A stretch of 63,598 nucleotides of DNA, counting the filler, from Lenisia limosa (lineage: Eukaryota; Protista; Breviatea), in NCBI GenBank assembly GCA_001655205.1. It is 13 parts of 13 records of this genome, joined end to end, with 100 filler letters (N's around TTAATTAATTAA, not from the genome) between each part and the next. Parts side by side here need not be neighbours in the genome. Positions count along the whole stretch, not along the records: positions 23,582 to 24,877 come from LPNZ01004078.1; 12 more parts are not named here. One strand, written 5' to 3'. Both the position numbers and the translations under genes were made by a program. Shown piece after piece: positions 1 through 24,978 of this stretch. Within the stretch, counting starts at the first letter, position 1. Each line of letters starts with the position of its first letter. Under the pieces are notes generated by a model that saw nothing but the letters and a program-made list of their open reading frames with translations, searched no databases and had not been told where the DNA came from.

Positions 1-1407
1 TCTCGGACCCGCCAACAATTGGCCGGCATGCTACCCCATTGTCTACCACAGTATCAAAAACGACATTTCCAGCTTGGGGCAGAGCATCTGTCGTCGCCAA
101 TACTTCAACTGGTGGCGTATGGGGGCTGATGAAACATATCTCCATAAATAACGTCAGCGTGGCGGTGTGGGCAGCTTCGGTAGTTTCTCCTTTTTCATTT
201 CTCCTTTCTAGACCAGTTTGGGAAACGTTTCAGTTCATTGATTGATATGGTATATGGAGGCATGAATTATTGCTTACGTTACTATCTCATTTTGCCATTC
301 ACAGCACAATCACGTCACCTTTCCAGTTACCTTCATTACATACTGTGCCAATGCTGCTGCTGCCACTGCTTTCCTTATGTCTGGAGAGGGAAACAATGTG
401 CGGGGGTGCAGGGTGGTGGGTATTTGGTACAATAACACGGGATTTACCTCCGGTCTGAATAAGGGCAATTAGTGGAGAGGTTCATTGTGGTGAGTGCTCC
501 CACGGACCATATTGAATACGATTTAACCCTTTGTAGGATTTGGATTACCAAAACACGTAACGCCATGATAAGCAGAAAAGACCAATACGTATCTCATCGC
601 AATACTTGACTTTTTGCCTTTATCACACTATAGGGAGCCCAAGACTTTGGAATCGCCCTGGCCTGGCTTGTGCTCTACCCAGGCCTTGCGTTCTTCCTGT
701 GGTACTTCAGATTCTATAACGCTGTCAAGTGGGAGGATTTCGACTGCATTTCTCAACATTTTTTTTTTTGTAATATGCTTTCATTCCATCTTTGCTTCTT
801 TTGGAATATTCTTTTTTTTCATCTTTGCTCCCCAGGAATAATCAACCCTCTGGCTACGGATTCTTCTGGATCTTCTTCACCCTCCACTTCATCATCATCG
901 CCATCTCTTGCATTGGTATTCAAGGACNNNNNNNNNNNNNNNNNNNNNNNNNNNNNNNNNNNNNNNNNNNNNNNNNNNNNNNNNNNNNNNNNNNNNNNNN
1001 NNNNNNNNGTTGCAAACCAACTTCCTTTAGAAAGTCCTCACTATAACTCTACCTTTGTACGTTGCCTCCAAAACAACAAGATTGGAGGGATTCAACAACA
1101 TCCTGCATTCTCTAGCACCAAAACTAACTATTCAGTGGCTTCATCCACATGAAGATTCTTCTGGATGAGAACAAACAGGTTGAAGCATTCTTTGCCATTG
1201 CCTCTTTTGCCTGCTTCTTCTTCTGGTAGGCTGTTTGTGTTTAATGTGAGGGAGGATTGTTTTTTTTTTGTTTTTTTTTGTTGTTGTGAAGTTATCCCAT
1301 TCATTCCGCGTACATTTCTGTTTTCCTGACAACCAAGTTTCATCTGGACCATAGTTATGTACGTGCAGTCTTATAAGCATCAACAGCAAATGGGTAGGAT
1401 TGGTTGA
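1..1407 (+). CDS. SCAMP: Secretory carrier membrane protein (SCAMP family), spliced, 5'-truncated
   Basis: Joined exons read LGPANNWPACYPIVYHSIKNDI..QYFNW / TFITYCANAAAATAFLMSGEG / GAQDFGIALAWLVLYPGLAFFLWYFRFYNAVK / NNQPSGYGFFWIFFTLHFIIIAISCIGIQG / GFIHMKILLDENKQVEAFFAIASFACFFFW. This matches the SCAMP NNWP motif, the LWY E-peptide region and four TM helices. The last exon and stop are tentative. Confidence 0.85.
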
Positions 1408-1962
1408 CTTGTTCGTGACATCTGGGGAGGCTTCGACGCCTTGATACGCTATTTATTAATATATTTTTTAGATTTATTAGCAATAGGTATATCTAACCCC
1501 CCCCCCCCNNNNNNNNNNNNNNNNNNNNNNNNNNNNNNNNNNNNNNNNNNNNNNNNNNNNNNNNNNNNNNNNNNAAGCAAAGAAGGCCGTCATTGGATGA
1601 TAGGCTTCTGTTAATGTATTTTATGTTTCTTGACCAAGCTGTTCCCATGTGTAATAACACCAAATCTTTACGTCTTGCAATGAGACAATACATATATAAG
1701 TGGACGCACCAAGGGCGCACTGAACACAGATGGGGTATATACCAGTGTACCAGTCTTCCTTATCCATGCGAAATGCAAAACTCAAATAGGTCCGGTTTTA
1801 AGTGTAAGCAGTCCCGGCAGCGCGGGCAAAGTGTGGAAATTTTTTCTAAAATTGAATCCCCGTTTCCACTGTTTGACTTAGGTTTGTGGTTATTAAAGCT
1901 GTAATATTGCAGTATTCTGTCCATTTTTGAGTTGACAGTTCAGACAGAACAGACTTGAAAAA

Positions 1963-4900
1963 ATGTTGAAGGTGTTTGCCTTTTTCGCGTTGATCGCACT
2001 TGCCCTTGGCCTCACTAAGAAGGAGGTCACTGATACCCTCGGATCTGTTGACGGAAACGACCACGTTGGTTTTCAATTTCTTCCAATTCCTCTTACCACG
2101 CTAGATCCACGTTGTTATCGTTGCTGGTTCTGACACATGGGGCAACTATCGCCACCAGGTTAGATATTACCTCTATTCTTCCTTGATGACTCACGAAATC
2201 TTCTCACGTTCTTTCCAGGCTGATGCCTACCACGCCTACCAGTCCGTTGTTGAGCACGGAATCCCTACTGAGAATATCATTGTGATGCACACTGTTTGTG
2301 GGGTAGAGCTGGTCCGATCATACCGATACTGAAGCTGCCCTCTGAGTTCTGATCATGGATACTTTAGGACGACATTGCCAACAACCGCCGCAACCCCCTC
2401 AAGGGTTACGTCCGCAACTACCCCAGGTTTCTGGGGTGAAACAGTGAAGCTAGTAAATTATCACAATAACTCATGGCATTCGTGGTAAAAAGTTGAGCCA
2501 TCTTCATGTCATGACACGTCTTTGGCTGTTTTGAAATCCTGAAATTCTCACAACATAGCCGTGATGCGCCCAACGTGTATGAAGGTGTCCCCAAGCACTA
2601 CACTGGTAATGATGTCACTCCCGCCAACTTCCTCTCCGTCCTCGTTGGTATGCCTGGCTTTTTAGTACCCAAGCGTTGTTTCCTTGTTTTAATGGCTTTA
2701 TCATAAATCCTCCCATTCACCCCTCCTTATTGCAATATCTGTCATTACAATGTTTACTATAAATGCCAACTTACCCCCCACCCCCTCTGTAGGTAACGCC
2801 ACCCGTTCCGGCGGTCCCGTTCTCGAGACCACCAAGGATGACCGTGTCTTTGTCTTCTTCGGTATGCCACGGTTATTGTATCCTCTCTCAGGGCAATATG
2901 GTTCAGCTTTTACGAAATGTACTACATTTTGATCGTTGTCATAATAAATATCATATATATATACATGTATACATCTCGAAAATACTGACTTGCTTGAGGG
3001 ACTTATTATCTACCCACCGGTAATCATTTGTAGTCGACCATGGAGGCCCCGGCATCCTTGCCTTCCCCAACGAGTACCTCCATGCCGCTGACCTCATCAA
3101 CGCTCTCAACGAGATGCACGCCAAGAACATGTACAAACAACTCGTCTTCTACGTTGAGGCTTGCTTTGCNNNNNNNNNNNNNNNNNNNNNNNNNNNNNNN
3201 NNNNNNNNNNNNNNNNNNNNNNNNNNNNNNNNNNNNNNNNNNNNNNNNNNNNNNNNNNNNNNNNNNNNNNNNNNNNNNNNNNNNNNNNNNNNNNNNNNNN
3301 NNNNNNNNNNNNNNNNNNNNNNNNNNNNNNNNNNNNNNNNNNNNNNNNNNNNNNNNNNNNNNNNNNNNNNNNNNNNNNNNNNNNNNNNNNNNNNNNNNNN
3401 NNNNNNNNNCCGCCAACCCCAACCAGTCCTCCTTCGTGTGCTACGAAGACAGCCAACTCGGCACTTACCTTGGTGAGTCTTGTGGATAGCATTACCTTGG
3501 GATACTCTTCTTGTATCACTGAGCACTCTTTCCATAAGTAGCATTTATAAACACCTATTCTTGATCTTTGTCCACCCCCCACACCCCTCACATTCAAGGT
3601 GACTTCTACGACATTGCTTGGATTGAAAACACCGACAAGGTTGATACCACCTCCGAGACCCTCCAGGAGCAATATGAGGTGCACTAGAGAAATCTATTAA
3701 ATGCAGCCTTCCGTTTTAAAACAATAGTCTCACCTGTCATCATCCATATCATTAACCCCACAGCTCATCACCCACTGGGTCAACGCGTCCATGATCTGCC
3801 AATACGGTGACCTCAGCATTGCCCAACAGCCCGTCTGTACGAGGGGGGTATTTACAAACGGGAGGAGTTTCACTTTTGAGAAGACCTCAATTGGTCGTAT
3901 TCGATAGACCCTCGAAAAGTATTGAAAAATCCTGTAAATATCTTCGGCAACATGGATGTTCGCATCTATTGTTGAATGGCTTGGACTGTACGCGGCTGTG
4001 TTTTATGAATGTAGCCGACTTCATGGGAAGCAAACAAGCCAAGACCTTCCCCACCACCAACCTCGCTGCCCCCAAGGAGGTAAGCGAAACTGTTCGTTAC
4101 TCCTGATTTTTCAGGGGGTATTTTCAGCTTGGACGGCTTCAGTCCTGGTTCCCTTGTGGACCATTTCTCACATTCTAGGTTATTCCAGCTCGTGAAGCTG
4201 AGAGGAACACTTTTATTGGCCACCTCATCTCTGAGGGTTTGGGGGGTTTGCCTTCCCACTGTCAATGGGTTCATATTTATGCAATTAGTATACTTCACAT
4301 ATCTGCAAAATCTTCAATTGATCTCCAATATATTATTTTACCATTGCTATGTTTAATAGTCCAGAATTGTACATAACCTCCCAGGCGTTTCAGCCAAGGC
4401 TGCCGAGGCCGTCGTCGCCCAGCAAGAGAAGTACATCAACAACCTGTTTACCAAGGTCCAGAGCGTTCTCTCCAACCAGTGCGGGGGAGGGGGGTAAGGC
4501 TTCACTTCGGTTCGGGAAAATATCGATAGTTTTCGAGGATTTATAGAGAAATTTAGTCTTTTTCCAAACCGAAGTTAAGCCCAGGGGGTGCACAATTGAA
4601 TCAGATTTGTTAATTCATTTACTCGTAAAACCTACATCATCTGGGTCTGACACCCCAGGCACCCCATCCTCAGCCTCCCCGAGCCACCCTGCAAGAAGAA
4701 GTGCGACACCAGCTGCATGTGCTACGAGTACTGCGAGTACCGCCATGTCTTCGTAGGGGGCGGCTAGTGTTATTATGAGGATTTGTAGAAGCCCCAATAT
4801 ACATAAGTATTTATAGTTATTTGATACGACCGTTTGGGTCAAAAAAAAATCTATTATTTTCGTATAATGTGTGTACTATATCTTCCATTAGAGAAGCAGG

Positions 4901-23260: not shown

Positions 23261-23591
23261 GGTTGGATGGTTGCCGTTTCAACTCGAAAGTCGATCGTTT
23301 TGTCATATCACTTCTTAATCGTTTGATCATATCGCAACTTACTTTATTGTTTTTGACCATATTATCACTACTTACCTTATTGTTTGATCATATCACTTAC
23401 CATATTATCACCACTTACCTATTTAATGGACCTCCCCCCACCCACTCTTTTTAATAGAACTAAAGCCCTAATTGTGACAATNNNNNNNNNNNNNNNNNNN
23501 NNNNNNNNNNNNNNNNNNNNNNNNNTTAATTAATTAANNNNNNNNNNNNNNNNNNNNNNNNNNNNNNNNNNNNNNNNNNNNCCCTTCTTAG

Positions 23592-24554
23592 GGCAAGTAT
23601 CTCCAACTCGGGGACCAAGAGGTGGAATTCAACCCCAACTTCCAGCTTTATCTTCACACCAAACTTGGTAGGGAGTTCTGGAGCACAAGAAAAAAAATAT
23701 AATACATTAGAAATCCATATTGGGTAAATGACCTACCATATAAGGCAACCCTTCTTTCCTGGCTTACCATATCAGGCAACCCCCACTACAAGCCCGAAAT
23801 CCAGGCCCAAACTACTGTCATCAACTTCACGGTCACTGAAGAAGGGCTTGAGGACCAAGTATGCTGGGGAGGCACATAGAAGCTGTGTCACAGTGTTGTA
23901 AGGCAAATGATTGGGTGAATTAATATTTAACCATAAGTCAACATCTCTTAGAAACTTGCTGGTGTAGGCACTCTAATATAGCCTCGAGAATCATAATGTT
24001 AATCTTATTAAATACCCTCAATTTCACCAGTTGATTTTGTGCTTTTTATTGTTTCATGAATTTTCCTATTTCACCCCCCCCCCTAGCTCCTAGCCCTGGT
24101 AGTCAACATGGAGCGTCCTGATTTGGAGGCACAGAAGTCGCAGCTACTTAAGCAGAATAATGAGTTCACCATCAAACTCAAAGAACTCGAGGACTCTCTG
24201 CTGCACAGGTGGGGTTGGAGTTTTTCTCTTGTTATTTGTTTGGTGTTTATTTTTATTTATTTTTTTATTTTATTTTTTATTATTTTTTTTTAGTGTTTGT
24301 GTGTTTTCTGGTGTTCAATTTTCAGTTTTTGCTTATCCCCATACCCCCCAGCCAACAGAGTTGATGTGCGTCTTTTTTTTTGTTTTTGTTAAATTTTCCA
24401 TTTTTACGAGTAGTTGTTTTTTGCAGAAGTAATTCATTCTTACCTCACCCCTCCCCCCAGACTATCCACGGCTGAAGGCGACTTCCTGGCCAATTTGGAC
24501 CTAGTAGAAAACCTCGAAAACACGAAGTACCTTGCAGCGGATATCGCCGATAAG
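23592..24554 (+). CDS. Dynein heavy chain, internal fragment (AAA5/stalk-return region), axonemal outer-arm beta-like
   Basis: Four exons: [25 protein letters not shown] / [28 protein letters not shown] / [41 protein letters not shown] / [22 protein letters not shown]. From recall this resembles DNAH9/11/17. Confidence 0.92.
23859..24086 (+). repeat. Composite repeated intron: module C at the donor and module D at the acceptor (dynein intron)
   Basis: CAA|GTATGCTGGGGAGGCACATAGAAGCTGTGTCACAGTGTTGTAAGGCAAATGATTGGG..CAGTTGATTTTGTGCTTTTT..ATTTCACCCCCCCCCTAG|CTC; the flanking exons join in frame as EDQ|LLA. Confidence 0.85.
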
Positions 24555-24597
24555 GTTGGTTAGGGGCTACTCTCCCACCCCACATAAAACACACATA

Positions 24598-24675
24598 CAG
24601 TGACCGGGATAAGTCTTGACCGATTTGCAATGTGGTTTCCCAAGGAAAAACGATCAAGACTTATCCCGGTCACTG
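24598..24675. mobile_element. MITE family B (TIR CAGTGACCGGGATAAGTCTTGA)
   Basis: 78-bp hairpin CAGTGACCGGGATAAGTCTTGACCG..CGATCAAGACTTATCCCGGTCACTG preceded by TA; related copies at 60066-60132, 60191-60226, 62181-62207 and 62483-62560. Confidence 0.85.
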
Positions 24676-24978
24676 CATAAACACACACACCATCACGTTG
24701 CTATCCTCATATCCCCCACGCTGGAGGGATGCTGTGCCTCAGAAGCTCCTGGCCTGAGCTTTGTTTGTGTTGTTGTTATCAACCTTCGTGTGTTGTCTGT
24801 CAGCCAACAGAGTTGATTTTGGGCTTTTTGTTTCATAAATTTTTCCATTTTGTTCATCGAAATTTCCTTCGTTTTACNNNNNNNNNNNNNNNNNNNNNNN
24901 NNNNNNNNNNNNNNNNNNNNNTTAATTAATTAANNNNNNNNNNNNNNNNNNNNNNNNNNNNNNNNNNNNNNNNNNNNA

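Follow-up and report, generated by a model that had tools for sequence, protein, structure and literature searches.

Introduction

Introners are the one process known to be capable of adding introns genome-wide. The working criterion by which they are recognised is that the introns of a group are alike out to both splice boundaries (Gozashti et al. 2022, PMC9860276), and surveys have counted 548 families in 175 genomes (2022; PMC9860276) and 1,093 families across 201 species (2025; PMC12130899). Among the families that have been classified, most are DNA elements bearing terminal inverted repeats; to about 72% of families no transposition mechanism can be assigned (PMC9860276, PMC12130899). The introner elements IE-A to IE-D have been described in Micromonas pusilla (Worden 2009; Verhelst 2013, PMC3879977; Simmons 2015, PMC4540971), and reverse splicing has been proposed as their route (PMC3879977, PMC4540971). 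As summarised in the 2022 survey, the introner-like elements of fungi (van der Burgt 2012, via PMC9860276) have no target-site duplication or inverted repeat, lie on the sense strand and are biased towards genes; reverse splicing is their proposed means of spread, after which copies would soon decay into ordinary-looking introns (PMC9860276).

Here we analyse an intron of a dynein heavy chain gene of Lenisia limosa, which lies in a window of 63,598 nucleotides, the whole stretch of DNA studied; all positions count along this window unless a contig is named. A first-pass annotation of the window had proposed that this intron belongs to an introner family built from a 5' cassette, C, and a 3' cassette, D. 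Our results point to an abundant family whose ends lie at the splice sites, and suggest that the dynein intron is probably a copy of it.

Results

The part of the window taken from LPNZ01004078.1 (positions 23582-24877), referred to here as the piece, carries on its + strand part of a gene for a dynein heavy chain of the axonemal outer-arm type, comprising four exons (Table 1). The best solved match of exon 3 is the Chlamydomonas outer-arm alpha heavy chain (7kzm_A residues 3484-3522, 31/39 identical, E 4e-11), followed by human DNAH9, and G+C content is 49-53% in the exons and 32-45% in the introns. Two public runs of the same organism hold this stretch: X1, which is taken as DNA because its depth is equal over exons and introns, and X2, a poly-A RNA library. 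Logan contigs reproduce the locus base for base. A single 576-nt contig of X2 aligned to 23775-23858, 24087-24205 and 24458-24558 in consecutive contig coordinates, with joints at 23858|24087 and 24208|24461, and its loose end before 23775, TCACACCAAACTT, is the end of exon 1. The joint 23858|24087 establishes that 23859-24086 is a true GT-AG intron which is removed exactly, at junctions that coincide with the module ends, as had been expected; the coordinates and sequence of this 228-nt intron were confirmed by direct check. Intron 2 begins with GTATGCTGGGGAGGCAC, ends with a C-run and TAG, and is placed between ...GLEDQ and LLALVVN... of the heavy chain, at the site called EDQ|LL below. The RNA contig covers the gene up to 24558 and then goes on into the next exon as TCCAAGCCCAGAAAATGG..., so that GTTAGG at 24559 is the donor of intron 4.

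Intron 1 showed no similarity to introns 2-4 by local alignment. It carries a 23-nt duplicate (23729-23751 against 23760-23782, 87% identical) of its own acceptor and the first 7 bases of exon 2, in which AAG replaces CAG, and the 3' end of the intron may have been lengthened or shifted by this small local duplication.

Table 1. Exons, introns and repeat modules of the dynein piece, and introns of the compared contigs.
Feature	Position	Strand	Description
Exon 1 of piece	23592..23667	+	translation, 25 residues + 1 nt
Intron 1	23668..23775	+	108 nt, GT-AG, essentially single copy
Exon 2	23776..23858	+	translation, 27 residues; RNA contig covers 23775-23858; DNA depth 15.3 = single copy
Intron 2	23859..24086	+	228 nt, phase 0, GTATGC...C-run TAG; RNA joint; repeat depth begins and stops at its ends
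Cassette C	23859..23965	+	donor-proximal part 23859-23889, highly conserved core 23890-23927, decaying tail to ~23965
Intron 2 centre	23966..24024	+	single copy at at least 80% likeness, depth 27.8-51.6
Cassette D copy	24025..24086	+	candidate branch sites TTCAT, TTCAC; C-run; acceptor
Exon 3	24087..24208	+	40 residues + 2 nt; structure match and RNA contig
Intron 3	24209..24460	+	252 nt; RNA contig joint 24208|24461, 3-nt CAG ambiguity
Internal D-core copy in intron 3	24349..24407	+	alignment; depth 1,600-4,100 at 24330-24417
D-like end of intron 3	24437..24460	+	alignment
Exon 4	24461..24558	+	32 residues + 1 nt; RNA contig
Intron 4, 5' part only	24559..24877	+	donor GTTAGG at 24559; remainder cut by piece edge
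Hairpin H, 84-bp palindromic MITE	24595..24678		22-bp perfect stem; target-site duplication flanks
Long D cassette	24726..24877	+	copy nearest family consensus; depth 47,000-193,000; loose end behind 24843, 59 contigs
EDQ|LL intron, L003/L004			G+C 39-42%; phase 0; GAG CAG|GTAGGT...TCTCAG|CTA CTA
EDQ|LL intron, L010			G+C 41%; phase 0; GAT CAG|GTACGT...GCTAG|CTA TTG
EDQ|LL intron, L011	L011:37-152		G+C 65%; phase 0; GAC CAG|GCGAGG...TTGCAG|CTG CTC; GC-AG intron
EDQ|LL, L002			G+C 58%; phase 0; acceptor only, CAG|CTG CTC
Similar introns, L003	L003:1591-1787 and L003:1926-2091		GTAGGTGTCAT...ACACCTCTCAG; neighbouring, in homologous dynein gene

The repeat content of the piece was assessed by aligning 4,905 X1 DNA contigs to it, and by a narrower second alignment at no less than 80% likeness in 10-nt bins. 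Unique DNA depth was 15-28, both exons flanking intron 2 included. Summed depth in the first alignment reached about 121,000 at 23890-23933, about 112,000 at 24594-24637 and 47,000-193,000 at 24726-24857. In the second, depth was 15.3 up to 23854, 909 in the donor bin (the value expected from six repeat and four unique positions), about 1,800 up to 23884 and 148,000-184,000 over the C core (23895-23924), and was down to 27.8 by 23975-24024; over D it rose from 190 to 4,700 at 24025-24084 (3,100-4,700 within 24045-24084), with 57.8 in the acceptor bin and 27.8 in exon 3. The limits of the repeat match the splice sites of intron 2 to a few bases, a coincidence far beyond what chance would give. 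The donor-proximal part of C, which by eye is an estimated 13-15% off the family consensus, has a depth of about 900-1,900, or 35-75 copy-equivalents at 80% likeness or more, and the C-D family as a whole ranges from about a hundred copies for the terminal parts (at least 80% like the diverged intron 2 copy) to several thousand for the cores. These copy-equivalents are summed depth over unique depth and are rough, since contig word depth differs from true copy count. The family consensus without the hairpin extends beyond 23927, and the intron 2 copy tracks it, decayed, to about 23965.

Other copies of the family end in the same way, as seen in contigs of one run, possibly the same data from which the genome was assembled. 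In this DNA run 1,117 contigs match the ends of intron 2 at 80% likeness or better. A 760-nt contig from another locus aligns starting exactly at 23859, and a loose-end 5' consensus of 75 contigs, ATGATGGGGAGGCACGCAGAAAGCTGTGTG, matches 23861-23888. At the other end, 58 contigs pass from D through the C-run, read CCAG and continue into unlike sequence (agreement 0.39), and the flanks of the other copies are generally unlike the dynein locus (agreement 0.39-0.6). The depth steps, the 760-nt contig and the 58 CCAG contigs bear out the earlier proposal that the 5' cassette starts at the donor and the 3' cassette ends at the acceptor. The branch candidates of D, of YTNAY type and read off the sequence, lie 14-32 nt from the AG; as C begins at the donor and D has these candidates, the C-run and the AG, the two cassettes hold all cis signals of the intron. 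In terms of the introner working criterion, several introns of one genome have a common sequence (D in introns 2, 3 and 4), and at intron 2 the similarity reaches both splice boundaries, with depth steps in the bins of 23859 and 24086. Module depth in the poly-A RNA contigs was 12-30, against 7.9 over the exons; relative to neighbouring exons the modules are about 2,000-fold rarer there than in DNA, which fits sequences that are spliced out or silent. A query of public runs with the long D cassette matched only X1 and X2.

Introns 2, 3 and 4 have D in common by local alignment. The scores of introns 2 and 4 (51) and of introns 3 and 4 (47) were each exceeded by none of 300 dinucleotide shuffles (z 9.8-12); the likeness of introns 2 and 3 alone was not significant (z 1.1). 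All four module copies within the piece lie in sense orientation relative to the gene. The last 43 nt of intron 3 (24418-24461) are single copy, so the similarity does not extend to the splice boundary there; the claim that D runs flush into the acceptor thus stands for intron 2, the only such case within the piece, and fails for intron 3. The 5' part of intron 3 is T-rich, of low complexity and unlike C, the 5' ends of introns 3 and 4 were no more like C than shuffles were, and the D copies of both introns are unaccompanied by C. From the D copy of intron 4 the family consensus goes on as ...CCATTTTTAC, a C-run and then CAG. At contig joints the intron 4 hairpin follows immediately on the C core; other joints run from C into D, from the hairpin into C and from D into C, or repeat C or D in tandem (C-C, D-D). 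With modules joined in so many orders, the repeat landscape is a mosaic, and the single ancestral C-D element of 230-350 nt that had been envisaged is too simple, the more so as introns 3 and 4 hold D without C. Within intron 3 we also observed a T-rich low-complexity tract with a period of about 10-12 (24246-24292), which is equally long in an independent X1 contig, where it was skipped as a repeat.

The hairpin of intron 4 had been taken as part of C. Its 32-nt arms are 91% complementary, its DNA fold has a free energy of -29.3 kcal/mol (z -9.7), and a perfect 8-9-bp duplication, AAACACAC(A), lies on either side of it, at 24587-24594 and 24679-24686; the flank is an AC-rich microsatellite, so that a duplication arising by chance is less improbable there. 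Depth is 8-28 in the sequence on either side and about 112,000 over the hairpin itself, equivalent to thousands of copies. Judged from its sequence, hairpin H is an independent 84-bp MITE with its own duplication, inserted into an existing intron 4 and unrelated to C. The decayed C hairpin proposed inside intron 2 was not recovered either, since 23928-24024 has no significant similarity to the intron 4 hairpin. Only sub-threshold miRNA-precursor-like Rfam matches were obtained for hairpin H; MITE hairpins often give such matches. A duplication of 8-9 bp is hAT-like in length, and it also suits P, Merlin or Zisupton elements. Like hAT-type MITEs, hairpin H is short, palindromic and non-coding; it has terminal inverted repeats, is bordered by an 8-bp target duplication and occurs in thousands of copies, the assignment being made from duplication length and form.

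The ends of the C-D family are of another kind. C compared with the reverse complement of D did not score above shuffles, and no flanking direct repeat longer than 2 bp was found at intron 2, and only a 3-bp CAG at intron 3, in agreement with the earlier remark that terminal inverted repeats are lacking. With neither inverted ends nor a duplication, intron 2 does not have the marks of a MITE-type introner. The features of the reverse-splicing type that it does have are element limits that equal the intron limits and the missing duplication. The RNA fold of intron 2 is nothing unusual (z +1.2); CTGGGG, close to the donor, is weakly complementary to the C-run that precedes the acceptor. Scans of the piece gave no Rfam family above threshold and no tRNA-like sequence, so that nothing points to an origin from a SINE or snoRNA. 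JGI metagenome contigs, scanned exactly for the D core and hairpin core, and viral contigs, scanned for the C, D and hairpin cores, contained no match; protein queries made of the open frame across D and of the exon 3 ORF gave no candidates.

No protein identical to exon 3 turned up in a representative search, and all relatives had at most 78% identity. Intron positions were therefore compared across distant dynein fragments and their contigs. An intron at EDQ|LL is present in at least three other contig lineages (Table 1). L001 has no intron across codons 3-125; L008, without an intron at EDQ|LL, has one at 44|45; and the fragments resembling Chlamydomonas or animal sequences are interrupted at 48|49, ahead of GLEDQ, and not at EDQ|LL. 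None of the positions of introns 1, 3 and 4 was matched in the compared relatives. EDQ|LL is the sole one of the four intron positions common to any relative and the most widely shared in the region, and it is at this position that the intron is flush with family sequence at both ends. By a rough count, the 379 coding bases contain about nine other intron positions used by relatives, and a random new insertion would coincide with the position of some relative with a chance of about 2% per intron; an old site, or else a strong hot spot, is thereby favoured. The first-pass annotation had held that positions shared with distant eukaryotes would speak against an introner origin, and the phase 0 intron at EDQ|LL in L003/L004, L010 and L011 goes part of the way in that direction: the position does not appear to be new, although at the distance of these relatives a recent re-gain is conceivable, the site of intron 2 may predate the C-D family, and creation de novo is unproven.

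Some apparent breaks at EDQ|LL were discarded. That of L007 is an assembly frameshift and no intron, and the starts of P0047 (L008) and P0141 (L009) at this site merely reflect start-codon choice or a contig end. L007, a long-read metagenome contig, has two frameshifts in conserved dynein exons at 2898-3264, assembly indels that mimic exon breaks. The L002 sequence, an ENA metagenome contig, starts at 1-28 with GGCAGCGTCAGATGTGTATAAGAGACAG, which we take to be a Nextera transposase adapter; its 5' end is thus untrimmed library sequence within a public assembly.

Other lineages hold suggestive introns of their own. In L003, a JGI metagenome contig, the introns at 53|54 and 99|100 are about 85% alike from first to last base (an estimate from the alignment), with two gapless segments of 86-87% identity, and both are ordinary intron positions in L010. 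From their sequences, they would be either an independent introner-like pair or the product of intron-to-intron conversion. At L005:115-255, and likewise in L006, a 131-nt GT-AG intron lies ten bases downstream of EDQ, with an 8-nt direct repeat (ATTTTAGC/ATCTTAGC) at both sides, and its splicing adds one codon (EDQILA-P-MIVNV); it looks like an intron made by a transposon with target-site duplication. The L003 pair and the L005/L006 intron keep the hot-spot reading alive. Elsewhere in L003, at 1277-1340, a dynein intron starts with (GTAT)n and contains telomere-like CCCTAA/AACCCT repeats.

Discussion

We consider it probable that an introner-like family is represented by the intron at 23859-24086, a copy that has diverged moderately. 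We propose a dispersed repeat in which the conserved 5' cassette C opens with the donor GTATG and the conserved 3' cassette D supplies the candidate branch sites, the C-run and the acceptor AG; a full C-D unit lying within transcribed sequence would then be removed exactly by the spliceosome. Copying would take the unit as an exact intron and leave no duplication at the target, and the intron 2 copy would either have created the intron or have replaced an earlier one at the same site. Creation and replacement of the EDQ|LL intron by a family copy appear to us about equally probable. For the family, the introner reading is kept because random colonisation of an old intron would not align the ends of the element with donor and acceptor. 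That part of the first-pass annotation, an abundant family with its ends at splice sites, holds; the origin of intron 2 from it is less firm, the EDQ|LL site being shared. The single-copy centre of intron 2, the internal D of intron 3 and the shuffled modules speak against the introner reading as well, and so do the D of intron 4 without C, the low depth of the donor-proximal part of C and the ordinary RNA fold of intron 2. Having no duplication and no inverted ends, the C-D family falls in with those of Micromonas and fungi; reverse splicing is the route proposed for these, and we infer that it may have carried the C-D family too.

That the EDQ|LL intron is older than the family, and was occupied by C and D from abundant transposable elements or through gene conversion between introns, is possible but rather doubtful. 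Such an account agrees with the same position and phase in L003/L004, L010 and L011 and the acceptor in L002, with the true secondary insertion, a hairpin MITE with its duplication, in a neighbouring intron, and with the D fragments inside introns 3 and 4 and the shuffled modules of other contigs; in Micromonas, 32 introner remnants lie buried in conserved introns (PMC3879977/PMC4540971). However, a random insertion would not set its first base on the donor G and its last on the acceptor G, base-exact deletions would be needed to trim the old intron away, and the depth steps fall at the splice sites, other copies also starting with GT and ending with CAG before unlike flanks. A different compromise, which we regard as unlikely, would be that the family owes at least part of its spread to the takeover of intron sites already present. 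After excision, the element would enter a spliced transcript, or displaced DNA, by reverse splicing at the precise exon junction and would then be copied back, and an ancient position would end up with a young family-type intron flush with both splice sites. A takeover-like pattern appears independently in L003, with its similar introns at the ordinary positions 53|54 and 99|100 of L010.

We think it quite unlikely that intron 2 is an old copy of a cut-and-paste DNA-transposon introner, of the MITE type known from Aureococcus, Symbiodinium and some Micromonas, whose inverted repeats and duplication have decayed. Most classified introner families are such DNA elements, MITEs such as the hairpin with its 8-9-bp duplication are active in this genome, and the CTGGGG/C-run complement points the same way. 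Yet this complement is weak and its G-run and C-run are equally explicable as splicing signals, C is no more similar to the reverse complement of D than shuffles are, and the flanking duplication is at most 2 bp at intron 2 and just CAG at intron 3. Chance resemblance, low-complexity sequence or an assembly artefact is hardly credible: although the introns are T-rich and C-rich and introns 2 and 3 taken alone reach only z 1.1, the pairs that include intron 4 lie far above shuffles, more than 1,000 independent contigs match the ends of intron 2, the Logan contigs agree with the locus throughout, and the RNA contig confirms the junctions. The reading as an introner-like copy therefore remains the one we prefer for intron 2.

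The C-D family is a further member of the well-documented introner class. What is notable in it is the very high copy number, the conserved ends round a variable centre, and the flush copy at a shared position. The locus is useful as it brings together RNA-verified junctions, clearly delimited end cassettes carrying all splice signals, the lack of a target duplication and a shared intron position. If family copies prove to be enriched at conserved positions, this would point to introners replacing old introns and not only creating new ones, and age estimates based on intron positions would be unreliable in such genomes. Without such enrichment, this would be one more introner family, of very high copy number, in a flagellate with a green-algal-looking dynein.

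Set beside the surveys of Gozashti and colleagues, the C-D family would join the roughly 72% of families without an assignable mechanism; its module cores are absent from two text supplements of the 2022 survey (PMC9860276). The fungal introner-like elements, as far as the survey describes them, resemble intron 2 in having neither target-site duplication nor inverted repeat; they are reported to fold stably, whereas intron 2 does not, and their copy numbers are far lower than those of the C-D family. The likeness to the Micromonas elements is drawn from architecture and not from sequence, and the C-D genome is AT-richer. In both systems hundreds to thousands of similar introns occur per genome, and the element spans the intron, carries the splice signals and encodes no protein. 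The Micromonas elements lie on the sense strand only, as do the four copies of the piece, and some of their families lack inverted repeats or target duplications, as at intron 2. Nested or merged copies and remnants inside conserved introns are likewise known from Micromonas, and have a counterpart in the mosaic described here. Unlike the Micromonas elements, the C-D family conserves only two end cassettes round a variable centre, and whereas those elements are reported at unique positions, the copy in intron 2 occupies a position shared with other lineages.
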